Part shown: positions 736-60,699 of the stretch, in pieces | Layout: each line of letters starts with the position of its first letter | How positions within the stretch are numbered: position 1 is the first letter of the stretch | NCBI RefSeq assembly: GCF_001194135.2 | Contig: NC_068985.1 | Location: 33,483,660-33,547,659, forward strand | DNA length: 64,000 nt | From: Octopus bimaculoides | Lineage: Eukaryota | Direction of reading: 5' to 3' | The notes under the pieces: generated by a model | Told to the model about the DNA's origin: nothing | Seen by the model: the letters and a program-made list of their open reading frames with translations, nothing else | The model's database searches: none | Program-made: the position numbers and the translations under genes

Positions 736-929
736 CTTCATATGCTTGATCAGTAATTGTGCTTAGCAAATCATTACATGAATAGACAGTGAAATTTGCC
801 CATAGGCAGATGCTAGCATTCCTCACCTATTAATATGTGATTGAGTGACATCACACATTCATTTCCAGAGGATTACAGCACATTTACATATTCTATAGAT
901 AAGTCACAACAAGAGTTCCATGATATGAT

Positions 930-1137
930 GTGATTCAGAGGGTTTGGCAAAGTGAAGAGGTTCCTCTGGATTGGCGTGATGCAACTATGGAGATACTATA
1001 TAAATCTAAAAGTGGAAAGGTTGTCTGTGATAATTATTGTGGCATCTGTCTGTTAGCTGTTGCTGGAAAGGTCCTCTGTAGGGTATTGCTGGATAGATTG
1101 CTTCTGCACATTGCTGATGAGGTTCTACCAGAATCGC
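930..1137 (+). mobile_element. RTE-clade LINE reverse transcriptase N-terminal fragment
   Basis: Translation VWQSEEVPLDWRDATMEILYKSKSGKVVCDNYCGICLLAVAGKVLCRVLLDRL...EVLPES matches the RTE pre-RT segment (W..A.I..IYK.KG...C.NYRGISLLS..GK...R..L.RL...LPESQ). It breaks off at a (CAT)n run. Confidence 0.85.
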
Positions 1138-1149
1138 ATCATAACCATG

Positions 1150-1500
1150 ACCATCATCATCATCATCATTTATTATCTGATTTCTATATGGGTATGGGTT
1201 TGACAAGTCATTATGGTCCAAGTTATTTCTTATTGGGAACCACTGCACTCATATACTGGTTCATGTACATGTTATTTGGCTTGGTTTCTTCAGCTGGATG
1301 TCTTTCTTACTGCCAGTTACTTTATAGAATGTATTGGGTGCATTTTCTCATGACACTAACACTAGAGAGGCTGTTTTGTTCTCAACAAGGCAGTACTAAA
1401 GTTTACTTACACTTCCTCAGCTCATTTGCTGATCACTTTACACTTTGTAATGGGCATATTTTTTGTGGCACCAGCAGTAAAGGTATTATTTTGGTCACCA
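1150..1500 (-). mobile_element. Degenerate 3' UTR/tail copy of the (GAT)n-tailed RTE family
   Basis: Similar to 57720-58000 and 61975-62370; follows a (CAT)n tail on the + strand. Confidence 0.55.
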
Positions 1501-1569
1501 ATCAGTCAGAGAGAGCAGAGGTAGTGCTTTCTGTAGTTCCACCAGCAGAGGACAGGGCTTGTATACAAT

Positions 1570-9052: not shown

Positions 9053-9395
9053 NNNNNNNNNNNNNNNNNNNNNNNNNNNNNNNNNNNNNNNNNNNNNNNN
9101 NNNNNNNNNNNNNNNNNNNNNNNNNNNNNNNNNNNNNNNNNNNNNNNNNNNNNNNNNNNNNNNNNNNNNNNNNNNNNNNNNNNNNNNNNNNNNNNNNNNN
9201 NNNNNNNNNNNNNNNNNNNNNNNNNNNNNNNNNNNNNNNNNNNNNNNNNNNNNNNNNNNNNNNNNNNNNNNNNNNNNNNNNNNNNNNNNNNNNNNNNNNN
9301 NNNNNNNNNNNNNNNNNNNNNNNNNNNNNNNNNNNNNNNNNNNNNNNNNNNNNNNNNNNNNNNNNNNNNNNNNNNNNNNNNNNNNNNNNNNNNNN
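9053..9395. other. Assembly gap
   Basis: N run. Confidence 1.
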
Positions 9396-10424: not shown

Positions 10425-10846
10425 NNNNNNNNNNNNNNNNNNNNNNNNNNNNNNNNNNNNNNNNNNNNNNNNNNNNNNNNNNNNNNNNNNNNNNNNNNNN
10501 NNNNNNNNNNNNNNNNNNNNNNNNNNNNNNNNNNNNNNNNNNNNNNNNNNNNNNNNNNNNNNNNNNNNNNNNNNNNNNNNNNNNNNNNNNNNNNNNNNNN
10601 NNNNNNNNNNNNNNNNNNNNNNNNNNNNNNNNNNNNNNNNNNNNNNNNNNNNNNNNNNNNNNNNNNNNNNNNNNNNNNNNNNNNNNNNNNNNNNNNNNNN
10701 NNNNNNNNNNNNNNNNNNNNNNNNNNNNNNNNNNNNNNNNNNNNNNNNNNNNNNNNNNNNNNNNNNNNNNNNNNNNNNNNNNNNNNNNNNNNNNNNNNNN
10801 NNNNNNNNNNNNNNNNNNNNNNNNNNNNNNNNNNNNNNNNNNNNNN
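10425..10846. other. Assembly gap next to a (TA)n/(TG)n microsatellite
   Basis: N run. Confidence 1.
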
Positions 10847-18970: not shown

Positions 18971-19120
18971 GACAGGTTTCTTTCTGTTTTCATCCACCAA
19001 ATTCATTTGCAGGGCTTTTGATGGCCTAGCCTATAGTAGAAGACACTTGCCCAAGGTGCCATGCAGTGGAACTGAACCCAAAATCATGTTGTTGGAAAGC
19101 ATGCTTCTTACTACATAGCC
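18740..19120 (-). mobile_element. Family-A SINE
   Basis: Same structure as 11-419, with an internal (CA)n run. Confidence 0.8.
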
Positions 19121-22129: not shown

Positions 22130-24130
22130 TATTATTATTATTATTATTATTGTTGTTGTTATTTACATACACTCAACAGAAAAGAAAAGAATCCTAACAT
22201 CAAACTACAGTAAGTAGCCTTAGATAGCAAGAACCCTCCTGTTGGGTTCCAGCAAGTAACCATAGATGCCAAGAACACTCCCTAAGTATCCTAGCTCTCC
22301 CTAATAACACTGTTTTCTGGAGCTGTACTAAACTGAATTTTATACCTATTTCTTCTATCCATCTGTTCAGATCTTTAGGGACAGTTCCCAATGCACCTAT
22401 AACTATTGAGATACATAGATACATTTTATCCGCTCTTTCCATAGTCTCTGTAATTCAATAGCTGGGTCCTGGTATTTTGCTATTTTTTCTATACTTCTCA
22501 TATTAATTTTTTCATCATTTGAGACTGTAAAGTCAATTATGTGACATTTTCTATTCTCTTTATCTACTCCTACCAATTCAGGCCTTCTAACTTCTATTAC
22601 TCTGTCAGTTTGAATGTTGAAATCCCACAAAATCTTGTATTTCTTACTTTCTAGTTCTTTACTAAGTTCATGTTCATACCATTTATCAGTATGTTCAAAT
22701 CCTAGATTTCTACATAGCTCCCAGTAGATTGCTCTCCTTAGATTGTCATGTCTTTTCTTGTATTCTTTCTGTGCCAGTAGGCTACATTCACATACTGAAT
22801 GAGAAACACTTTCCTCTTTTGATTTGCATAATCTACATTGGGAATCTACTTGGCTCTTGTTTATCGTGGCTTTTATCCAATTAGTCCTTAATGCATGATC
22901 TTGTGCAGCTACTAACAAACTTTCTGTCTCCCTCTTCAGCTTTCCTTTCTGCAGCCATAACCATGTCTCACTACTACTATTTGATGAAACCATCTTGTAA
23001 ATGCCTGTAAATGCCTTCTGAAAGCATTCCTGTTAACAGCTTCCACACTAATGGTAAGCAAGTGATTGGTCTATAGTTGCTAGTTGTATTACCCTTGCTT
23101 GTATGCTTCATAATGACTAGTGTTCTCCCTCTAGTCTTCCAATTTGGTATTATTCCTCCATTAAGGCAATCCTAAAGTTGTTCCCTTAGCCTTCCATGTA
23201 AACTACTGAATTTATTTAGCCAGTATCCTTGAACTAAATCTAGTTCTGGGCCCTTCCAATTCGGCATTTTCCCTCATTAATGCACAAGTTAATCTTAGAT
23301 CTGGCTGCTTCTCACTCACTACTTCTTCCTTCACTTTCTTTAACCATACTGTATCTCCATTATGATTGACTGGTTTATCCCAAATATTACTCCAGAACTT
23401 TCTAGCTTCCTCTGCATTAGGTTTCTCCTCTTCAGTACTTCGTTCTCCACTATTTATTTGGTTATAAAATCTCCTCTGGTCTAATTTATTCTGTTGATAC
23501 TGATCTATTCTTTTCTGATATCTGGAGAGCTTGCCTGCTACTGTTATGGTACACTGCTACTCTTCTATTATTGTCCTAAATCCTTTCTCTTTGACTAAGT
23601 ATCTTTCCTTAAGGCAAGATTTGCATCTTGTGTTTCCTAATTAGTTTGTTTTCCAGGCTTCTATTCTACTTAGATCTTGACTTGACTTTATTTTGTAGTC
23701 TCTTTTTCCACATTTGCACTTTTTAAATCTTTCCCTGTGAGACATCTAATCTTCTGGTGACTACTACCCCGCCTGCGTAGATCAATAAGTTAGTGTCTTA
23801 TATATTTTTAGTATCTATCCTACTGATAACAGAATCTACTTTTCTAGTCATTTCTTGTACCTTCCTTCTGTTGGTGCCTTTATTATATAATGGCTTTTAG
23901 TCATTTTTATAGAAAGCTGAAGTATATTGGAAATTCCCAGCCAATGAAATGCTTTCAATTTCTAATTCTAATTGGAGTGGTTGCTTTCCCTTTTTACCAA
24001 TCCCACTGTACCAACCATTATTGGGATTAGCAAAAGTATAGTCATTTCTTCCCCCACTCTTTTGTTTGTCTGTCTATTTTTTCTTTTTGTTTTGTTTCAT
24101 GAGATTTCTTAGTCTCTTGAGGTTGTCTGA
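22130..24130 (-). mobile_element. R4/Dong-clade non-LTR retrotransposon remnant with the RT core deleted
   Basis: The C-terminus has ETESLLVAAQD.ALRT, a CCHC finger (CRLC...SHSVCEC), RHD, ILWDFNIQTD..IE.RRPE (RLE region) and IVIGALGTV...LQKTVLLG. The N-terminal part ends at NYRPITCLPLVWKLLTG. An (AAT)n 3' tail lies at ~22130-22160. Confidence 0.9.
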
Positions 24131-27657: not shown

Positions 27658-27769
<112 letters not shown>

Positions 27770-31676: not shown

Positions 31677-32222
31677 NNNNNNNNNNNNNNNNNNNNNNNN
31701 NNNNNNNNNNNNNNNNNNNNNNNNNNNNNNNNNNNNNNNNNNNNNNNNNNNNNNNNNNNNNNNNNNNNNNNNNNNNNNNNNNNNNNNNNNNNNNNNNNNN
31801 NNNNNNNNNNNNNNNNNNNNNNNNNNNNNNNNNNNNNNNNNNNNNNNNNNNNNNNNNNNNNNNNNNNNNNNNNNNNNNNNNNNNNNNNNNNNNNNNNNNN
31901 NNNNNNNNNNNNNNNNNNNNNNNNNNNNNNNNNNNNNNNNNNNNNNNNNNNNNNNNNNNNNNNNNNNNNNNNNNNNNNNNNNNNNNNNNNNNNNNNNNNN
32001 NNNNNNNNNNNNNNNNNNNNNNNNNNNNNNNNNNNNNNNNNNNNNNNNNNNNNNNNNNNNNNNNNNNNNNNNNNNNNNNNNNNNNNNNNNNNNNNNNNNN
32101 NNNNNNNNNNNNNNNNNNNNNNNNNNNNNNNNNNNNNNNNNNNNNNNNNNNNNNNNNNNNNNNNNNNNNNNNNNNNNNNNNNNNNNNNNNNNNNNNNNNN
32201 NNNNNNNNNNNNNNNNNNNNNN
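31677..32222. other. Assembly gap after (CA)n/(ACTC)n repeats
   Basis: N run preceded by (ACTC)n at ~31622-31676. Confidence 1.
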
Positions 32223-36702: not shown

Positions 36703-36986
36703 GGTGTTGTGTATGATTGTAATTTTTGAAAGCAGATGACATTTTCATAACAGTATAGCTGTAATTTATTCCATTGATATTGTAAATTGCCAAAATAGCA
36801 AAGATGCACTTCATACAAATGTTGAGGCTCACATTAAACCACAAAAAAGATGAAATCATAAATGTATATATTTGACCTAAAATTTGTAATTAAGAAAGTG
36901 ATACCCAACTTTTCCATATCTCTTCTGTCTAAAAATGAAGTTTTAATTTTGTAAACAATTATAATAAGTAATGTTGACTTAATCTA

Positions 36987-37200
36987 AGGCAGCAAGCTGG
37001 CAGGAACGTTAGCACACCAGGCGAAATACTTAGCAGTATTTCGTCTGTCTTTATGTTCTGAGCTCAAATTCCGCCGAGGTCGACTTTGCCTTTCATCCTT
37101 TTGGGAGTCGATAAATTAAGTACCAGTTGCATACTGGGTCAATCTAATCAACTGGTCTCCTCCCCCAAAATTTCAGGCCTTGTGCCTAGAGCAGAAAAGA
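36987..37200 (+). mobile_element. Family-B SINE, young CpG-retaining copy
   Basis: GGCAGCAAGCTGGCAGGAACGTTAGCACACC...CCGCCGAGGTCGACTTTGCCTTTCATCC...GGCCTTGTGCCTAG. Confidence 0.9.
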
Positions 37201-37740
37201 ATGTTAACTTAATCTGTTGCATGGTTTAACACCACAAGGACCTTGGTGCCATTAGCAGAGTCCACTGTGTTGAAAGCATTCAGGCAAGGCTTTCCATTTG
37301 AAGTTTAACTTCCTTTCTCCCTCCCACCTAGCTCAGAGCCTTGAAGGTCTGACTAAGCCATTAAAACAATTAGTATTTTCAGTAAGAGTTGACTGGTTGT
37401 TATTATTTCCACCACATCTAAGGCATCTTTTCACAAGTTATGGTTGTTGTTATTGTTGTTTAGCTCCAGGTCAGCTCTGATCAAGCATACTGATCAAAGG
37501 TAATCAAACCATGGCCCTACTATCCTTTCTTTCAGACTATGTTATCCAATGTGTTCGTTTTTAAGACCATAGAGCATGGTTCAAGTGTGATTTAGTTACT
37601 TTTTCTTATTTAACCTTCCCACAAATATATATGTATTCATATGTACATACATTCATTAATTCCTTTTCTGCATGCTTAAAATTTACTAGTTGTACTTATG
37701 TGTTATGGATACCTGATGTTTTTATATTTTTTGATACAAA

Positions 37741-37841
37741 CTAATATTCATCTTTTGTTTCTTCTTTTTTTTATTTCTCATAGGTAAGTGTTCTAGAAGG
37801 ATCTACCTGAAATTTAAAAATCTATGTTGTTAACTGTAAGT
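37741..37841 (+). promoter_or_regulatory. Strong 3' splice site abutting a consensus 5' splice site (candidate recursive-splicing ratchet point)
   Basis: CTAAT (37741-37745), AG-free zone 37690-37781, 27 of 30 pyrimidines at 37751-37780, TAG|GTAAGT (37783|37784) and a second GTAAGT at 37836. Confidence 0.6.
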
Positions 37842-39109
37842 AGAAGAAATATTATAAATTACAGGAAATGTGAAAAGCTAAGATATTTTATCTAGTTACA
37901 CCAAAGAAATATGATTGTTAGAGCAAAAGTGTAGCACACTGGAGTACTGGACAGAAAAGTCATCCAATCAAACTCCTGGCTTTACTTACCTAGTAGATGA
38001 GCTGAAAATTGAAACTATTTTAATTTTTAAGTGGTTAATATTAGAACAATCTAAATCCTGCAGTAACAATTCAAATATCCAAATTTTAAAATCATTTCTT
38101 CCACTTCAACATAAAAAAATGTGTTGCTGTATGTCTAAAGGGTTTCTGAATCCTCTCTAATATAAAGTGTCACAAGTGCTTTAACAGAAAAGTGTCTGCT
38201 GGTCTAAGAGAGGGTGTATCACTATTACTTTTCTAAAGTATTGTGACTATTGTTGGAGTGGACTGGTTGTGTAAATAAATTTGATTGATGGAAATGTACA
38301 GAAGCCTGTTGCACATACACATAGATTTACACATACATACACACAGACATTTTTATACATACATATACACATGTGCGCAAACATGTATATATGACTGTGA
38401 TTAAGAAATTTGCTTCCTAACCACATGGTTTTTGGGCAAGTGTTTTCTAATATAGCCTCAGGCTGACCAGAGCCTCATGAGTGAATCTGGTGGATGGAAA
38501 GTGAAAGAAACTCGTGTTTGTGTGTGTGTGCATGCATGCATCTCTGTGTCTGTGTGTGTGTCTCTGTTTGTGTGTTTGTGTGTGCACCTCTGTGTGTGTG
38601 TGTGTATGTGCCTGTGTGTGTGTGTGCGTGCATGCATCTCTGTGTCTGTGTGTGTGTCTCTGTTTGTGTGTTTGTGTGTGTGTATGTGCCTCTGTGTGTG
38701 TGTCTGTGTGTGTGTGTGTGCACATGTGTTTATATGTATATGTATAGGCATGTGCGTGTATATATCCATGCCTGTGTTTATGCTTATATATGTAAAGCAA
38801 GTGCTGTACCCTCCCTTCGATAAAAAGTGTAACTTAATTATTTGAAAAAATATAGATCAGTGAATTAATCAACACACTGAATTACAGACTACAATTGATA
38901 TGATTGACTAAAATTCTTGAAGGCTATGGTTTAAACTAGTAACAACAAAAGAATAGTATAGACTAGCAGTCTTTCCAGATAGAAATTCATCTCTCATCTG
39001 TTTCACAGAATATCTAGAGTCTTGAGAAAAAGAAAAAAAAGAGTAAAATTTTATAATTATGCTGTGAAGAAGAATCGAAGAAGTCAACGTTTTGCATAGT
39101 GTTCCTTTG

Positions 39110-41912: not shown

Positions 41913-43249
41913 AGGTGTTAAGCTTCCATCAAGATTGGTGGGCAATTCAGTTTTGTTTCTCAATGGTATTTGCTAGCTTTGTTGTTTCTCTTGTTAAAGG
42001 CATAAATGTCACAATTATAAATTTCTTTATCTCTACCAACATGAAGATTTATATCTCTGCGAGAAATTATTGTTAATGTTGTTAGCAGTATAAATTTAAA
42101 TTTCAGGTGAAGTTATTGCAAATTCTGCCATGGTTGACCTTGCTTTCATCCTTCCTTGGTTGATAAAATGAGTACCAGTCAAATATTGAGATCAATATAA
42201 TTGACTTTACCCTTTCTTTAAATTTGTATCCAAAAACCAAAACTTAGAAATTTCTACTATAGGCACAAGGCCTGAAATCTTGAGGGGAAGTGGCTAGTTG
42301 ATTACATTGACCCTAGTACTCAGCTGGTACTTCTTTCATTGAGCCTGAAAGGGTGAAAGGCAAAGTTAACCTCAGAAGGATCTGAACTCAGAATGTAAAG
42401 ATGGATGAAATGTTGCTAAGCATTTTGTCTGAAATGCTAATGATTCTGCCAGCTCACCATCTTCAAACTTAGAAATAGCAATAATAATGATAATAAATAA
42501 TAGGCCATGTGTATCTTGACTTTTATAAAAATTGGTACACCATATCCCTGCATGACATAAGAAGCTACTAAAAGTATAGGCACCGAGAAGGGTCGTAAAA
42601 CATTGTGGTGTTGAATTATTTATAACTTTGGCATAGGACCATATATTTGTGGAGGGGAAAATTAGTAATTTAATCAACATTAGCACATTACTAGTACTGA
42701 TGAAAATAATATTAATGATAGAAAGATTAGAATTTAGAACATAAAGGAATGAAACAAAACATTACATTTCCTCTAGTATAAAATAACAACAGTAACAAAG
42801 CATGTTTTTGATAATTGTTCTAACTTTTTACATTTTGAGTTAATTTCATTGGCCTCAGTTTTTGTCTTTCAGTCTTTTGGGATTGGTAAAATACTTTGGT
42901 ATTTTATCAATCCCAAGTACTACTCAAATACTGGGGTTGATGGAATTGACCACTACCCAAAGTTGATCTGGATTCTGAAAGTAAAGAGCCAGAATAAATA
43001 CTGCATATGTATTTTGTTCAATGTTCTAATAATTATACCGATCCACTGCTCGAGATGCCATGCAATGGGATCAAACTAAGGATGAAATTTTATATGATTA
43101 TTTTCAAAATAAAAACTTGCATTTTAAACTATCTTCAACCTCTACAAAAAATACTGTATTTTGAATTAATTAATATAATACTCATTAATTTAATAGGCAG
43201 TTAGGGAAGGGCTATGTTGATTACATTGACTCCATTTAAGAGTACCCTT

Positions 43250-43731
43250 CAATTACTGGGCAATAAATTGCACTTGCAAAGACCTGTTGAGTCAAGTGAA
43301 GTCATTGTCATCACTGATGACAATACCGCCTGATTGGCATCCATGCTGGTGGTGCGTAAAAAGCACCATTCAAGTGTAATCGTTGCCAGTGCTGCCTGAC
43401 TGGCTCCCGTACCAGTGGCACGTAAAAAGCATGATTCAAGTGTGGTCATTGCCAGTGCCACCTGACTGGGTTCTGTGCTGGTGGCATGTGAAAAGCACCA
43501 TTCAAGCGTGGTTGGTGCCAGAACCACCTGACTGGCCCTCATGACGGTGGCATGTAAAAAACACCCACTACACTCATGGAGTGGTTGGCATTAGGAAGGA
43601 CATCCAGCTGTAGAAACTTTGCCAGATCTGATTGGAGTCTGGTGCAGCTTTCTGGCTTGCCAGCCCTCAGTCACACTGTCCAACCCATTCTAGCATGGTA
43701 AGCAGACCTTAAACGACTATGATGATGATGT
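43250..43731 (+). mobile_element. RTE 3' UTR copy with an internal ~66-nt tandem array
   Basis: T(A/G)AAAA(G/A)C anchors at 43357, 43423, 43489 and 43555, ending in a (GAT)n tail. Confidence 0.85.
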
Positions 43732-46037: not shown

Positions 46038-49000
46038 TTATTATTATTGCAGGTTTTGTGCCTTTAGTAGAAAGAGTTATTGTAATTATTATTATTATTT
46101 GTTGTTTTTTTTTTTAAAGAGATGATGCTAGCTCAAACAACAAGAAACTAGATTAGATGCTTCATTGTGATTAAATTTATGCCTCACTATTTTGCATTCT
46201 AATTATACTGGAGTGAATGCTCTTGTTCTTGTAGATATGATAAGGGCTCAAAGCTGATTAAAATGGTGGTACAACAGTCTAAATCTTGCATCAAAAGGGG
46301 GCAGTCGCAAGAAAAAAAAAAGATATCTTCATCATATATGTGTAAGATTTAAAATCACATCTAGATAGTGAATTTAGAAATAGCGAAGACACCTGGCACA
46401 GTATTAATGAATTGCTGTGAAAGAGTACAGGCTAAACTAAATCTCATATATAATATTGTAAACTAAGTGTATCTATATATGTATGTAAAACTCTAAACAA
46501 CCTTTTAAATCAGTCTAAAATGATAGTAAAATTTTAGAAATTCTAATTTTGATACATTTTTAAAATATTACTTTTATTTCAATTTTGAACACCATATTTG
46601 TTCAAGCCCCACAGCTGTTTCTCTAAAGCCCTTATTCACTACAATTACCATCTCTCCTTTTTCTTCCTTCCACCTTTAAACTTTGATTCTCTTTGTCAGT
46701 TCAACTTACCTCCCTAATTCATGTTGATTTTTACTACCATGACAATATTATTATAACAACATAAAAGGAAGGGAGCAAAAATTGCTCATGTTTAGTAAGG
46801 AGAATATATTTATGTATTTCCACATTTCATATTTTCACACATTTCATAACTTTTAATTTTATAAATGTTTAAAAATTATTATGTGTTCTGGAGTTGTTTT
46901 ACTATTTATTTTGATATTAGAAAAGGACATATTAGATACTCTACTTCCATATATACAAAAGGATGAGATAATATATCACACAAACTAGGGCATTGAGCTG
47001 ACAAAATTGTTAGCACTATAGGCAAAATGCATAGCAGTAATTTCATCCATCTTTACATTCTTAATTCAAATTCCACCAAGGTTGACTTTACCTTTAATTC
47101 TTTTGAGGTACACAAAATAAGTACCAGCCAAATATTAGGGTCGATGTAATCAACAGATCCCCTCCCATGAAATTACTGGCCTTGTGCCAAAATTTGAAAC
47201 CAATATATTGCATAAACTAAGAAAAAATTTCCTGAGGCTGTTATTTCTCACAGTAATTTATAGCAATTTTAATGAAATGCAATTGGCTGGAAATTATGAA
47301 TAATCTAAAATTATGCCTTGAGGTTAGAATTCTCTGTGTCTCAACTTATTGTATTACTCTTGGTATGGTAACCCCCCATTATTAGAACGTATCTTCATTG
47401 TATCTTTTCTGCAAGTATTTCCATGGCCATGGCTCAAGCCTGGTGCTTTCTGTTAAGTCTTTTAAACACATCACCCACTTCTCATCTTAGGTGTTCCATT
47501 TCTCTGATGAGCTTTCTGTTAGTCATAAATCCTTTTATTCTAATAGTTTCTTTCCTTGAACTGCTGCTCTCCGAAACTCACTATCGTCATTTTGTTTTCC
47601 TCTGTTCTATGATGTTCTGTTTTTTAAGCTTTCTGCCAATTGACATTTTTTGAATTTGTAGGCTTCTTCTTTTGCTTATTTGTAGTCCCTTACACTTCAC
47701 TGGCCTTGAGCCTTGTTTGAAATAAAATCATATAAAAAAATTATCAGATTGCTTAATTGCTTTTTAGTTACTTTTCCTTTCTTCTTTTTAATTTGCTCTT
47801 AAGGCATCAACAAACAGAAGTAAATTTAGTAAAACAAATGCAAAATATGATGTTCATCATGATTGAAGGCTATCAGATTGGCAGTTTACCAGGTGGCAAA
47901 TGATAACTCTCAGATTGTAAAGTCAAAGTGTGTGTGGATTCTTTGTTTTCACTGATAACTACTGGTCTCCTGCTAAGAAATTAGGTCACATTTACAGCAC
48001 CACAACCAACAAGCCACTTAAGCACCAAGATACCATTTGGGCAACACCAAAAGTGGTGAGCAGGGTGCAATAGATATCATTACTAGATAAGAAAGAGAAA
48101 ACTTTTACTGCTGCTGATATTACTTCACCTAAGTTCATTTATAATTACCTTGACAAGAAATGAAACAAGATTTTACTAATTTTTAAAATGTATGTTTGAC
48201 TAGTGTGTTGGTGGAATTCCTTATCAGGTGCACTTATTGAACACATCAAGCATAATCTTGATTGATGAGAATTTGTTAGATATATCACAAATTCTCTAAC
48301 AGTTATCATTGCTATTCTTAATGTAATGCTATTTTTAAACAATGGGATTCAAGGAGATTCGTATCTGAAAGGGAATCTTTTTCCTTTTATAAGATGATTT
48401 ATGATGTTGGAACTAGAAACTCTTTATTTTATAAAGTATTGTATCTGTTTATTATTTTTTAGCTTTTGCAGATAGTGCACTACCATATCTCTCATATATC
48501 TGATCCTTTGCATAGAGTTCAAGATTAAATTTATCTATTACAAAGGCATTTGTTTCTCAAACTTTTTCTGTTATTACAAATTTTAAACAACCTGTAACCA
48601 TGGGTATCTTTATCATTCAACATCCCACCTCTTAAATTATAAAATTTATCTACAACTTATAATGCAGTATATACATGTATGCTTTACATTTTCATTGTTT
48701 ATACTTACTTTCTGTTGCATCAAAACACTGCATGGTGTTCTTTGGATGAGTGTTAATACAGAGAGTAACTACTTCCTTACAGCATGAAGCAGGATTAGAA
48801 ATTTTAATTTGAAATCAAAGAATATGAAAAGGATACAAAAAGTTTGTGTGTTTATGTGTGTGTGTGAGAGAGTGTGTGTGTGTATCATGTTTAGTTCTGT
48901 TTCATCCTTTTTAGGCATCTTAGTATGTCTCAACCTGTAAATTCATTAATTAGAGGTATTATAAAGAGAGGCATTACATCAAAATACTTTTGTGTATTAC

Positions 49001-49644
49001 AAGTGTCAGTTTATCGTATGTTGTTTGCACAAAATGCAACTATTCCCTGTGTATTTATCTCATTTCCATTTCTAATTCTTTAATATCTAGGGTGATATGT
49101 CCTCACCTATAAAAAATACCAACAAGATTGTCCTTAGTGCAGCATGTTTCCAAATAGTACATTTGATTAGGTGATGTTCTATAAGCTACTGGTACCATAT
49201 AGCTAAGTACAGCCAGTCTCATGGTTGGGTAACCCACTGTCATCCAGTTTTCTGAATGGAGAGGGTGTTCAAACACTTGACAAGATTAAAAATAAATCCT
49301 GTTAAAGGACAGTAAAGCTTTTTACAGAGAACTGAACCTGTTCAGGAAACAAACACCACAAAGTTATCTATACTGAAACATCTCTTGGCGTGTACCCATG
49401 GCCTCTCATAGTTATGAGTTTTTATGGATATTTACTATAAATATTATTTCTGTAATTTCTATATAGGTGTTCTCAAGCCTCTGTTTATTTTAATGAAATA
49501 TACTGGCATGGCTGTGTAGCTAAGAAGTTTGCTTCTCAAAAATGTGGTTTCAGGTTCAGTCCTAATACACAGTGCCTTGTGCAAATGTCTTCTACTGTAG
49601 CCTCAGGCTAACCAATGTCTTGTGACAGAAACTGAATGAAGCCC

Positions 49645-49682
<38 letters not shown>

Positions 49683-50699
49683 GTTTGCACAACATTAACA
49701 AACAGTAAGCTGCAAACATTAAAGTTCAACAATTCCTTGTCAGCAAATTGTCTAATAGTTCCATGCTTTGAAGATGTCTGGAATTTAAAAAATCCCTTAC
49801 TTGAGAAAGGAGTAAGGGTTAGTGACAGAAAAAGTGCCCAACTATAGAACAATTCCTCAATATTCATTCATCTGACCCATGCAAGCATGGAAAAACAGAT
49901 GTCAAATAAATATTATTTGTTTGACATCTGTTTCATTAGAAAGTCTTGGATTATCAAAAAGAAACTGAAAAATCTTTATTTTCATTAACTTAAGAGTATT
50001 ATTTTCTAAACCTCGCTTAATTAAATAGTATTCTCATACAGACAAATAGCTTAGTAGGTAGACATTTTCACATTTTAAATGTTTCTTCCTCATTACTGCT
50101 GTAATTTTCTTCATTAATATTGCTGTCTTCATTACAATCATTGTCGTTGCCATCTTCATAATCATCGTCATTACTTTTAATATGATCATCATTGCTGTTG
50201 ACATCATCATTTCATCATTGCTCTCTTCATCACCACCATCGTCTTCAACATTTTCATCATCGTTATCATTGTCATCATCAACAAATCTCTATGCATACTA
50301 AATGCAGTTGTTAAGTGGTAGTAGAGGACAAACGCACACGCACACACACACACTAAAATATATAAAACAGGCTTCTTTTAGTTTCCATGTCCCAAATCCA
50401 CTCAAGAGACTTTGGTTGGCCTGGAGCTATAGTAAATGACACTTTGTGGTATAATCTTGTACCATTTCTGTACAATGCAAGCTGGAAGAATCATTAGTAT
50501 GCAAGGTAAAGTGTTTTGCAGCATTTTGCTCATCTTTTAATTCTGAGTTCAAATTCCACCGAGGTTGACTTTACCTCTCATCCTTTCAGGGTTGATAAAA
50601 TAAGTAACTGGTTGAGCATTGGAGAAGATGTAATCAACATACCCTCTCACCCAAATTTACTGGCCTTGTGCCAAAAATTGAAACCAATATAAATGGTAA

Positions 50700-51180
50700 A
50701 ACACTATTTTCACCAAATTTTGTGAGAATGAGGGTCCTCTGGTGAGTGACATAGGAATGTAAAGATCCAGTAAATTTGTTTTTATGAAAGCTGTACTGGT
50801 GGTCACTAACCAGGGAAAGAGGTTTAAAATGGTTGAGAAGACTGGTGTTAATTGCTGTTTCCATTACCTTTTCAATGTTGAAAGTGAAGATGATAGGACA
50901 ATAATTGACAGTGATAGAGTGGTTGTTCTTCTTGAGAATGGCACATGCTGTAGCATGTTTTCAAAGATCAGGCTATATCCCTGTAAAGTCAGAGATTTAT
51001 GTGGATAGGAGATAGAATGGGGGTTGCATTGATAGAGGGTGGTGTAAAGGACATGACTAGCAACCTTATTGATTGGAATTGACTGGAGGTACCATTCCTT
51101 TTAGCATGTATGTTTGCATGGTGCTGAATCTGGTCGAATAGAAAAGAATAGGGAAAGTTTTGAAGGAAATGTACCAAATC
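50700..51180 (-). mobile_element. CR1/Jockey-group LINE RT fragment
   Basis: METAINTSLLNHFKPLSLVSDHQYSFHKNKFTGSLHSYVTH resembles the M(E)..IN..L..HL....L.SD.QYGFR..RST.DLL.Y.T motif. Confidence 0.7.
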
Positions 51181-57719: not shown

Positions 57720-59900
57720 AAAACTCATCATCATTTAACATCTATTTTCCATACTGGTATGGGTTGGATGGTTTGACAGGAACTAGCAAGACCAGAGGTA
57801 GCACTAGGTTCCATAGTCTGTTTTGGCTTGGTTTCTACAGCTGGATGACCTTCCCGTCACCAACCACTTTACAGAGTGTACTTGGTGCTTTCTATATGCG
57901 CTTTTTACATGGTGACAGTATCAGTGCTTTTTACATGGCACCAGCACCAACATCAATGCCTTTTATGTGGCACTTTGGTTTAGAATACCATTTCTGCTGT
58001 GGTGGGTGAGTTTTCTTGAGTACAACAACGCCACATATCTCAGTCCTCTATCATCTCCTTTGTGAGGTTCAGCATGTCTTTCTTTCAACATCCTTCCACT
58101 TTAAGTGATTGGCACTTCTTTATGCAACAGTCCTCATCCATCCGCATCATGTGACCAAATCAGCACAGTCTCCTCTCTTGCACACTGCATATAATTCTGC
58201 TTATGCCCATTTTTTCTCTCAATACACTAATATTTTATTACACTTGTACACTGATATTGCACATCCAGCAGAGCATACCAGCTTCATTCCACTCTAGTCT
58301 TTGCATATCCTCTGCATTCAGGGTCCATGTCTCACTACCGTGTAGCATTGCTGTTTGTATTCATGCATCATACAATCTTCATTCCACTCGGAGAAAGAGA
58401 CCTTTGGTTGCCAACAGAAGTAAAAGCTCTTGCTATTGGGTTGTCCGGAAAGTTCGTGCCGATTTTCCAAAAGGTTCTTCTCACTCAACTCATATGGTAC
58501 CCAAACATCGTTGCAATTTAACTACCCAAGCTTTACCAGGTGCTCATGAACGACGGATTTTGATAGGTTGAGGCTTTCTGGCAATTCTCGGGTTGTGCAA
58601 TGTGGGTTATTCTCAATTAATGACTTGATTTGGTCATCATTTGTAGTGGATGGTCTGCCTGATCGCTCTCTATCAATAAGGCTACAATCTCCAGCTCGGA
58701 ACCTTGCAAACCACTTCCATACAGTTTTTTCAGATAAAGAAACATCACCGTAAACTGCGCATATTTCTTTGGTTGCTTGTGAGGCATTTTTCCCTTTACG
58801 GAAAAAGAAAAGCACCAAGTGCCGAAAATGAACTTTCTAGTCTTCCATTTTAAAGGGTTACAGAATTAACACAGGTTATAAGAACATAAACCTTCTTCCA
58901 CGAAAAGATAGCTTAAACTGTGCTCTAAATGGAGGTGTAGTCAAATCCTATTTTATGGACTCAACCATGTTCTAAAATAAGTCGAAAGGTAAGCTACTAT
59001 AAATTGGCACGAACTTTCCGGACAACCCAATAATTACTCTTCCTGTATAACCTCCTCCACTGATAATTAAGTCACATAGGTAGCAGAAATTATTTACAAC
59101 TTCCAAAGACCCTCCAAGGACATTTGATGAAATCAGTTTCCTGTGGATCTGTGGTCTTTATGGCTCCTGTACATCTTCCTTATACAAACACTACTTTCTC
59201 TGTTAACGTTTTCTGCACCTGTTTTCTGTAGCTTACACTAGGTACACTGAATGGAATTTCTGCCTTAACCCATCCTACATATATAGCAGGGCCATTTACC
59301 TGAAGAGAGTAGGGTCCCATCTGATTTCTTACTTTCTAGGATTTGGTCTTTGCTAAGTTAACTTTAAGACCCTATGATTCCAAGTTCTGTTTCCGCACCT
59401 GGAATTTCTTTTCTAATTCAGTTATAGATTCTGCCATGAGGGCCTGATCAGCATATAGTAGTTCACATAAGCTTCCAGTCTTAAATTTCTCTGTTATGAC
59501 CTGGAGGCCAATAATGTATAAGAGGGGCTGAGGACCGAGCCTTGATGAACACCTACCTGTACTCTAAGTTTATCACTGTACCTATGGCTAACTCTTACCT
59601 TACTAACAGCACCCCTATGCAAGGCCTCTACTGCTTTCACAGGATATTCATTTACCCCTAGTTTCCTCAGAGACTACCGTATCACAAAGTGAGGTACTCT
59701 GTCAAAGAGTTTATCTTTATCAACAAATGCCAAGTACAATGGCCTGTTCTTAGCTAAATACTTCTGTTACAGTTGCCTGACTATGAAAATTGCATCACTG
59801 GTCCTTCTCCTAAGGACAAAGCCAAACTGTATTTCAACTAGTCTAATTCTGTATCTAATTAATTGGGCTACAATTCTCTCCACAACTTTTATCACCTGGT
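57720..59900 (-). mobile_element. RTE-clade LINE (RT region to 3' tail) interrupted by a mariner
   Basis: Minus translation QVIKVVERIVAQLIR...QFGFV...TSDAIFIVRQL...YLAFVD...FDRVP...VGVHQGSVLSPL covers 59500-59900. The C-terminal region and the (GAT)n-type tail continue at 57720-58433. Confidence 0.85.
58436..59030 (-). mobile_element. Internally deleted mariner (Tc1/mariner) element
   Basis: 30-bp TIRs TTGGGTTGTCCGGAAAGTTCGTGCCGATTT / AAATTGGCACGAACTTTCCGGACAACCCAA with TA duplication (58434-35, 59031-32). The ORF reads MED*KVHFRHLVLFFFRKGKNA...KWFARFRAGD...RSGRPST...WVPYEL and has no DD34D domain. Confidence 0.95.
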
Positions 59901-60699
59901 CCAGCAATTTACTTTATAAAAAGTTCTATGTATTTTAACTATGCTAGTAATTAATTAAAACTGGAAAATTTTGGATCACCTATTTCTGTTCATTCATTAA
60001 AAAAACCCCACAACTTTACAAATAAAAATTGTTTAAGGTAACTAATTGTATTAATATTTTTATAATCATACTGAAATTTAAATAATTGCTAGCTTTGCAT
60101 CAACTGATCATAGATTTACTTCTTTTTTTTATTGACTTTTGATGTAACATTGGTTTCAATTAGACAGTTCTTCATCATAAAAGCACACATTTTGTTTTCT
60201 AATTTAGTGAAATATATCTGCTTTGTTAAGCTTGCATCACCATCACCATCATCATTACAATCATCATCATCATCATCACCATCACCATCATCATCATCTT
60301 CATCTTCACCAACTCCACTATCATTGTAATCATCATTTTGCATCTGCTTTTCCATACTGGTATGGATTAGGTGAGTCCTTATAGTCTGATTCAGTTTTCT
60401 TTTGGAAGTACTATCCTGCTAGATTGTTTGGGGACTAATTTTTGCTTGTATATTCTGCAGTTGGATGCCTTCCTTAGAACCATGCCAAAAATAGAACATA
60501 AATAATCCTTGCCATAAATAGTTATAAATATATCTTGTGTAGATTCTATATAAATTTCTTGTTTACTTAATATTCTTTCATAACCACCTTTCTAATGAAA
60601 CACTATACATTTTAATTCATCGTCATTTAACATCCGCTTTCCATGCTGGCATAAGTTGGACAGTTTGACAGGAACTGGCTAGGTAGAAATTATCATGAC

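Follow-up and report, generated by a model that had tools for sequence, protein, structure and literature searches.

A candidate recursive splice site with a putative 52-nucleotide cryptic exon in the genome of Octopus bimaculoides

Introduction

Does a stretch of octopus DNA in which a candidate 3′ splice site runs directly into a consensus 5′ splice site hold a ratchet point, that is, a recursive splice site at which a very long intron would be removed stepwise? Recursive splicing has been demonstrated in flies and a few vertebrates, and a 2024 preprint describes its identification in fruit flies, mice, and humans. The initial annotation of this locus had regarded the process as uncharacterized in molluscs, and our literature searches agree: no paper linking the two was found, and searches that combined recursive splicing with octopus, cephalopods, or molluscs returned only coincidental entries in reference lists. 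Cephalopod genomes are large, with many long introns in neural genes, and cephalopods are suited to asking whether bilaterians in general deal with long introns by removing them stepwise.

The window analyzed here is a stretch of 64,000 nucleotides from Octopus bimaculoides (contig NC_068985.1, positions 33,483,660 to 33,547,659); all positions below are counted from its first letter, and a slash marks a potential splice junction. The junction in question lies on the + strand, with 37784 as the first base of the donor. As far as its sequence goes, it is a very clean match to a ratchet point and a good candidate for one.

Splice Signals at Position 37784

Read directly, the + strand runs ...ttcatcttttgtttcttcttttttttatttctcatAG/GTAAGTgttctagaaggatctacctgaaatttaaaaatctatgttgttaact/GTAAGTag. 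A candidate 3′ splice site AG (a TAG acceptor, 13.7 bits) is located at 37782–37783 and is abutted by a GTAAGT at 37784–37789, the candidate ratchet-point donor that would be regenerated after ligation of an upstream exon. TAG/GTAAGT thus spans 37781–37789 (+), with acceptor and donor juxtaposed as they are in recursive sites. Acceptors and donors were scored with a simple weight matrix of approximate frequencies, and all bit values given here are approximate as well. On this scale the acceptor is the fourth best on the + strand and, except for one at 37332, the best to be found outside repeat copies and the LINE remnant bearing reverse transcriptase (RT).

The acceptor is preceded by a polypyrimidine tract, CTTTTGTTTCTTCTTTTTTTTATTTCTCAT, which occupies 37752–37781 (+) and contains 27 pyrimidines in 30 positions, a prominent tract of the sort that at recursive sites is stronger than at ordinary acceptors. 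The preceding AG lies at 37688–37689, leaving an AG exclusion zone of 92 nt (37690–37781, +) that is among the longest of those at the window's 28 top-scoring acceptor-like sites. This zone reaches 62 nt past the pyrimidine tract, an extension to which our own arithmetic assigns a chance of ∼3%, given that AG occurs in the window at a frequency of 0.056 per position. Two candidate branch points are found on the + strand within the AG-free zone: CTAAT at 37741–37745, whose putative branch A, at 37744, precedes the exon start by 40 nt, and TTCAT at 37747–37751, with its A at −34. Because the branch points of fly recursive introns lie mostly at −36 to −21, the candidate at −34 fits, and the one at −40 is slightly distal.

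TT is present at −5/−6 in 99.5% of fly ratchet points, a fly-specific feature that is not required of vertebrate sites; the octopus site has T at −6 and C at −5. In its architecture the locus resembles known recursive sites in the motif, the tract, the 52-nt candidate exon, the stops, and a plausible branch point at −34 or −40, and it lacks the TT dinucleotide of flies.

The Putative Cryptic Exon and Its Two Donors

The candidate cryptic exon (RS-exon) spans 37784–37835 (+). Its length of 52 nt is not divisible by three, and each frame holds one stop codon (TAA at 37785, TGA at 37808, and TAA at 37831). The interval resembles an RS-exon in being short (∼50 nt), followed by a downstream donor, out of frame, and provided with premature stops. 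On recount, the AG/GTAAGT junction, the 92-nt AG-free zone, the CTAAT motif, the 27 of 30 pyrimidines, the second GTAAGT, and the stops were all found exactly where the initial annotation had placed them.

The downstream 5′ splice site, a candidate RS-exon donor, is the GTAAGT at 37836–37841 (+) in the context ACT/GTAAGTAG. The intronic hexamers of the donors at 37784 and 37836 are identical, and any advantage of the regenerated donor hinges on the last bases of the upstream exon. The regenerated donor scores 13.0 bits if that exon ends in CAG and 11.9 bits if it ends in AAG, and the same hexamer with its genomic TAG scores 10.5 bits. The downstream donor, ACT/GTAAGT, reaches 6.4 bits, below the regenerated donor because its exon side is poor. 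After either of these two exon ends, the regenerated donor is predicted to be the stronger of the two.

A search of 5.8 billion proteins with the frames flanking the site (four frames, concatenated) gave 0 matches, and the non-coding open reading frames (ORFs) of this genome are therefore taken to be absent from that collection.

Rarity of the Junction within the Window

The octamer AGGTAAGT is found once on the + strand, at the 37784 site, and twice on the − strand (37984–37991 and 46704–46711). About one copy per strand is predicted by base composition, and the octamer alone is therefore unremarkable. Both − strand copies are without a pyrimidine tract, and 37784 was confirmed to be the sole + strand AG/GTAAGT that has one. 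Among the ∼7,500 AGs of both strands, seven (four on + and three on −) are preceded by at least 27 pyrimidines in 30 positions.

When the 375 AG/GT junctions of both strands were ranked, 37784 came out on top with 22.5 bits, followed by a − strand site with 17.0 bits and, on the + strand, by one with 14.1 bits; it is a 5.5-bit outlier over all other AG/GT in 128 kb of strand sequence. With the list of motifs by which vertebrate recursive sites are called, 68 AG/motif sites were obtained, and only at 37784 was the acceptor worth at least 10 bits. The second-best junction, ttttttatAG/GTGAGG at 49101–49108 (−), has an acceptor of 8.1 bits (sum, 17.0), and no donor was found 25–100 nt downstream of it.

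The chance rate was taken as the number of equally strong acceptors (6–7 in 128 kb of strand sequence) multiplied by the frequency of a GTAAGT-class hexamer after AG (∼1e-3), which yields an expectation of ∼0.005–0.007 combinations of strong acceptor and GTAAGT-class hexamer per 64-kb window. A donor at least as good as ACT/GTAAGT occurs within 25–100 nt with a chance of 12.5%, and an exact GTAAGT with a chance of 1.6%; from ∼0.006 per window and these donor chances, the joint expectation is therefore ∼1e-4 to 8e-4 per 64-kb window. The AG/GTAAGT combination at 37784 exceeds chance within this window, by a rarity test that is post hoc in that the site was chosen for looking striking. Scaled to a genome of ∼2.7 Gb (an assumed size), these rates amount to ∼200–300 chance sites, ∼4–30 of them with a downstream donor. 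Since hundreds of chance sites are expected genome-wide, a single instance cannot prove function.

Surroundings of the Site

The sequence at 37210–38430 is unique, with no second copy in the window, and by this within-window comparison, which detects repeats present more than once, the site does not lie in a recognizable repeat copy. The unique DNA is flanked on one side by a multi-copy short repeat (36952–37206) and on the other, from ∼38430, by a second short repeat and a TG-rich tandem array. The array (38515–38722) has a period of 96 nt and 2.2 copies and follows directly after the short interspersed repeat; another tandem repeat, with a 66-nt unit in 3.2 copies, is located at 43355–43565. 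A repeat segment found at 19055 (−) and 38420–38480 (+) may, as a lead only, correspond to an abundant Octopus SINE, and a literature search with the SINE-like repeat string found nothing. The 24-mer of the site itself had 0 exact matches among JGI metagenome contigs, a form of matching that misses diverged orthologues.

Among the window's strongest acceptor-like sites, many (...gactttgcctttcatcctttcag/G) belong to copies of one short interspersed repeat. Acceptor-like sites borne by this single repeat family lie at 50590 on the + strand and at 42344, 11393, 61271, 3646, 4159, and 18127 on the − strand, and the family supplies what are, from their sequences, ready-made predicted pseudo-acceptors in both orientations.

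No Pfam domain was detected in ORFs of at least 45 aa between 33.4 and 44.5 kb, the threshold being at least 52 aa elsewhere in the window. Throughout the 64 kb, the comparison of stop-to-stop ORFs with Pfam gave no recognizable host-gene exons and transposon pieces only, and the window contained no Rfam families and no tRNAs. With transposon fragments alone and neither Rfam families nor tRNAs, the 64 kb therefore resemble one long intron or an intergenic stretch. As no Pfam-recognizable host exon occurs in 64 kb, an intron here would, if transcribed, be very long, like recursive introns.

The transposon pieces include decayed LINE RT-like frames in both orientations, at 924–1568 (+), 22203–23171 (−), 33429 onward, 50637–50960 (−), and 58975–59913 (−), all recognized by eye except for 22406–23032 (−), where Pfam matched the RT zinc-binding domain zf-RVT. 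The best relatives of this last fragment are 57–61% identical and are found on marine metagenome contigs in ENA. At 58525–58836 (−) there is a remnant of a mariner/Mos1 transposase helix-turn-helix (HTH) domain (Pfam HTH_48, E = 6e-21), whose closest database relative, 83% identical, comes from an amphipod, with ants and bees next; such a patchy spread is typical of horizontally spread mariners. Cephalopod proteins were not among the best relatives of either the RT fragment or the mariner HTH. A further Pfam match, to “Atrophin-1” (E = 2e-6, below the curated cut-off), was rejected as spurious, being the translation of a (TC)46 microsatellite at 27663–27754 into an RE/SL repeat. Runs of N at 9053–9395 (343 nt), 10425–10846 (422 nt), and 31677–32222 (546 nt) have microsatellites on their flanks and are assembly gaps at simple repeats.

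The composition of the window differs between its strands. On the + strand T exceeds A by 5.1% overall and by 4.9% after repeat masking (z = 9), an excess seen in 29 of 32 2-kb bins and 14 of 16 4-kb bins, and G exceeds C by 2%. The polyadenylation hexamers AATAAA/ATTAAA number 129 on the + strand and 168 on the − strand (p = 0.03), and strong donor-like sites number 55 and 38, respectively (p = 0.10). In the introns of Drosophila and humans, T has been documented to outnumber A on the coding strand, and by that measure the skew favors the + strand as the likely sense strand, an argument that is borrowed from flies and humans, is uncalibrated for this organism, and draws on three signals that are not independent. 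CpG is strongly depleted throughout the window (observed/expected of 0.10–0.27 in 4-kb bins). Given the mosaic gene-body methylation reported for octopus, this depletion could mark a germline-methylated gene body; as evidence for a gene body it was set aside for want of a genome-wide baseline against which to calibrate it.

A Possible Route of Stepwise Intron Removal

In the route that we propose, the 52-nt unit would first be recognized by exon definition, between the branch region (∼37744–37750), the tract, and the AG at 37782–37783 on one side and the donor GTAAGT at 37836 on the other. An upstream exon would then be joined to 37784, and the first part of the intron would be released as a lariat. 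This ligation would yield xxG/GTAAGT, which would have more complementarity to U1 than the ACT/GTAAGT located 52 nt downstream, and it is for this greater complementarity that the next step is proposed to use the regenerated donor. Together with the remaining intron, the 52 nt would then be lost, and the mRNA would bear no mark of them. Choice of the downstream donor would instead add to the transcript an exon that shifts the frame and is filled with stops, with degradation as the probable outcome. The architecture of the site and its rarity were computed, and the mechanism proceeds by analogy throughout, with + strand transcription, use by the spliceosome, and the order of the steps being inferred.

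A further element might bear on the choice between the two donors. The sequence ACTTACCTAG at 37983–37992 (+) is a perfect 10-nt complement of ATAGGTAAGT at 37780–37789, lies 194 nt downstream of it, and shares its core with the 5′ end of U1 snRNA. In both the minimum free energy and the centroid folds, these segments are paired with one another. The fold around the ratchet point is no stabler than those of shuffled sequences (z = −0.35), and there are many comparable inverted pairs nearby. Read on the − strand, the complement (37984–37991) is a second AG/GTAAGT, with a weak acceptor of 6.1 bits. That the complement, ACUUACCUAG, would pair with the regenerated donor and tune exon skipping against inclusion is speculative, and we consider it most improbable.

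Alternative Readings of the Locus

The reading in which 37784 is a real recursive splice site with a cryptic 52-nt RS-exon, within a very long intron whose host gene is on the + strand and has its exons beyond the window, is put forward tentatively, with a likelihood that falls somewhat short of even. It may instead be that a T-rich tract stands before AGGTAAGT by coincidence, in DNA that goes untranscribed, is transcribed from the other strand, or is ignored by the spliceosome, a functionless juxtaposition that we regard as a serious possibility, if on the doubtful side. The tract itself may have begun as the A-tail of an antisense retroposon and since decayed, the − strand reading GAAATAAAAAAAAGAAGAAACAAAAG; it is the stretch GAAATAAAAAAAAGAAGAAAC on that strand that suggests an origin in such an A-rich tail. 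A chance origin is consistent with the frequency of AGGTAAGT, which is as base composition predicts (one copy on + and two on −), and with rates of 0.006 per window, or 1e-4 to 8e-4 with the donor, that translate into tens to hundreds of sites in a gigabase genome; the site was, moreover, picked for its striking look. Strong acceptor-like sites also arise readily in this DNA, several of the window's best being located in repeat copies, and the protein, Rfam, and metagenome 24-mer searches returned no homologue, RNA family, or conserved element at the spot. Against chance stand the 5.5-bit lead over all AG/GT in 128 kb of strand sequence, the exact second GTAAGT at a distance typical of RS-exons (1.6% by chance), and the extension of the AG-free zone to 62 nt past the tract (∼3%), together with a compositional skew that favors transcription of the + strand.

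The AG and the two donors could also be put to more ordinary use. The interval 37784–37835 might be a short + strand exon (a 5′-UTR, non-coding RNA, or poison cassette exon, or an expressed RS-exon), maybe clustered with 37332–37469, the GTAAGT at its start being incidental or only occasionally active; we judge this unlikely. Three of the 12 best + strand acceptors, at 37332 (14.2 bits), 37536 (12.1 bits), and 37784 (13.7 bits), span only 452 nt and, together with donors at 37470 (CAG/GTCAGC, 9.1 bits), 37784, and 37836, all fall within 510 nt. The best acceptor-ORF-donor candidate of the whole window, 37332–37469, lies 315 nt upstream of 37784, and in mammals thousands of expressed exons start with donor-like sequence. 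This cluster of predicted splice signals leaves room for a small group of non-coding exons, yet its p value is only ∼0.03–0.1 by our own rough estimate (a scan statistic for the three acceptors within 452 nt gives ∼0.03), and no more than ∼1 of 1,000 exons is expected to open with a perfect consensus donor. The stops in all frames and the length of 52 nt rule out a constitutive coding exon, and a protein homologue for the flanking frames was not found among 5.8 billion proteins. As a coding exon, 37332–37469 (+) was itself rejected: it has no homologues, an exhaustive HMMER search having given two translated tandem-repeat proteins that were judged spurious. It is far less probable still that only half of the motif is used, with the GTAAGT at 37784 serving as the donor of an exon at 37536–37783 or the AG serving as the acceptor of a terminal exon that ends at an AATAAA at 38274. 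The former could draw on the acceptor at 37536, which scores 12.1 bits and precedes the donor by 248 nt (the donor itself scoring 10.5 bits with its genomic TAG), but an exon that ends in a 30-nt pyrimidine tract with a branch-like motif upstream of it would be odd. For the latter, 38274 is the position of the first downstream AATAAA, but U1 sites suppress nearby poly(A) sites (U1 telescripting), and such a terminal exon would begin with two consensus U1 sites that should do so here. Neither form of this reading is accompanied by coding potential or a homologue.

Returning to the recursive reading, its stricter form, in which 37784 is a constitutively used ratchet point in the giant intron of a cephalopod gene, is a little more doubtful. 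If it is true, molluscs, and indeed lophotrochozoans as a whole, would gain their first recursive splice site, and the design of ratchet point plus cryptic RS-exon would go back to the bilaterian ancestor, serving the very long introns of cephalopods. Once validated, such a site would add a third major animal lineage to those in which the mechanism operates and would provide a locus for tests of donor competition outside model species.

Comparison with Known Recursive Sites and Pseudoexons

Antisense Alu elements offer a precedent for the tract, as their poly-T supplies the pyrimidine tract when retroposon tails are exonized. The octopus tract resembles such tails in being, on the − strand, an A-rich tail with AATAAA, a plausible origin for the acceptor. 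It differs in that no repeat copy covers 37210–38430 within the window, and a retroposon origin would in any case be compatible with a present function. Deep-intronic pseudoexons and poison exons are likewise short, stop-containing intronic segments with a good acceptor and donor; the DMD pseudoexons (PMC7175933) are an example. In contrast to the octopus interval, pseudoexons seldom begin with a consensus donor, and a poison exon is visible in mRNA, whereas a ratchet point is traceless.

Vertebrate recursive sites follow the same logic as those of flies (Sibley 2015; Blazquez 2018, both as summarized in later papers). According to these summaries, the vertebrate sites in long neuronal genes share with 37784 an AG/GTAAG that belongs to the calling list and show what is predicted for 37784, namely an RS-exon set by a downstream donor, premature stops upon inclusion, and an outcome decided by donor competition. 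The same summaries describe them as having been called from saw-tooth read density in brain RNA, within introns of tens to hundreds of kb, whereas 37784 has been recognized from DNA only.

There is also a likeness to the ratchet points of Drosophila, which are juxtaposed acceptors and donors that have an unusually strong pyrimidine tract and are conserved (Hatton 1998, Burnette 2005, Duff 2015, Joseph 2018/2021). Fly recursive introns are 11–133 kb long, and fly RS-exons are ∼50 nt in length, generally out of frame, and poorly conserved in content, with a weaker donor of their own, skipping being decided by competition between the donors. The octopus site departs from this set in the C at −5 and in one branch candidate, at −40, that is slightly more distal than in flies; moreover, the fly sites were defined by conservation and splicing intermediates, in contrast to a site seen so far as sequence, and a cephalopod belongs to another superphylum. 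In other respects the resemblance to the ratchet points of Ubx, kuz, and Bx is close. A pyrimidine-rich acceptor is fused to GTAAGT, the regenerated donor would outscore that of the exon if the upstream exon ends in CAG or AAG, and the lack of nearby exons is compatible with a very long intron. As in flies, the junction is followed by an out-of-frame cryptic exon of ∼50 nt with a second donor, the microexons of Ubx measuring 51 nt and the candidate exon of the octopus 52 nt.
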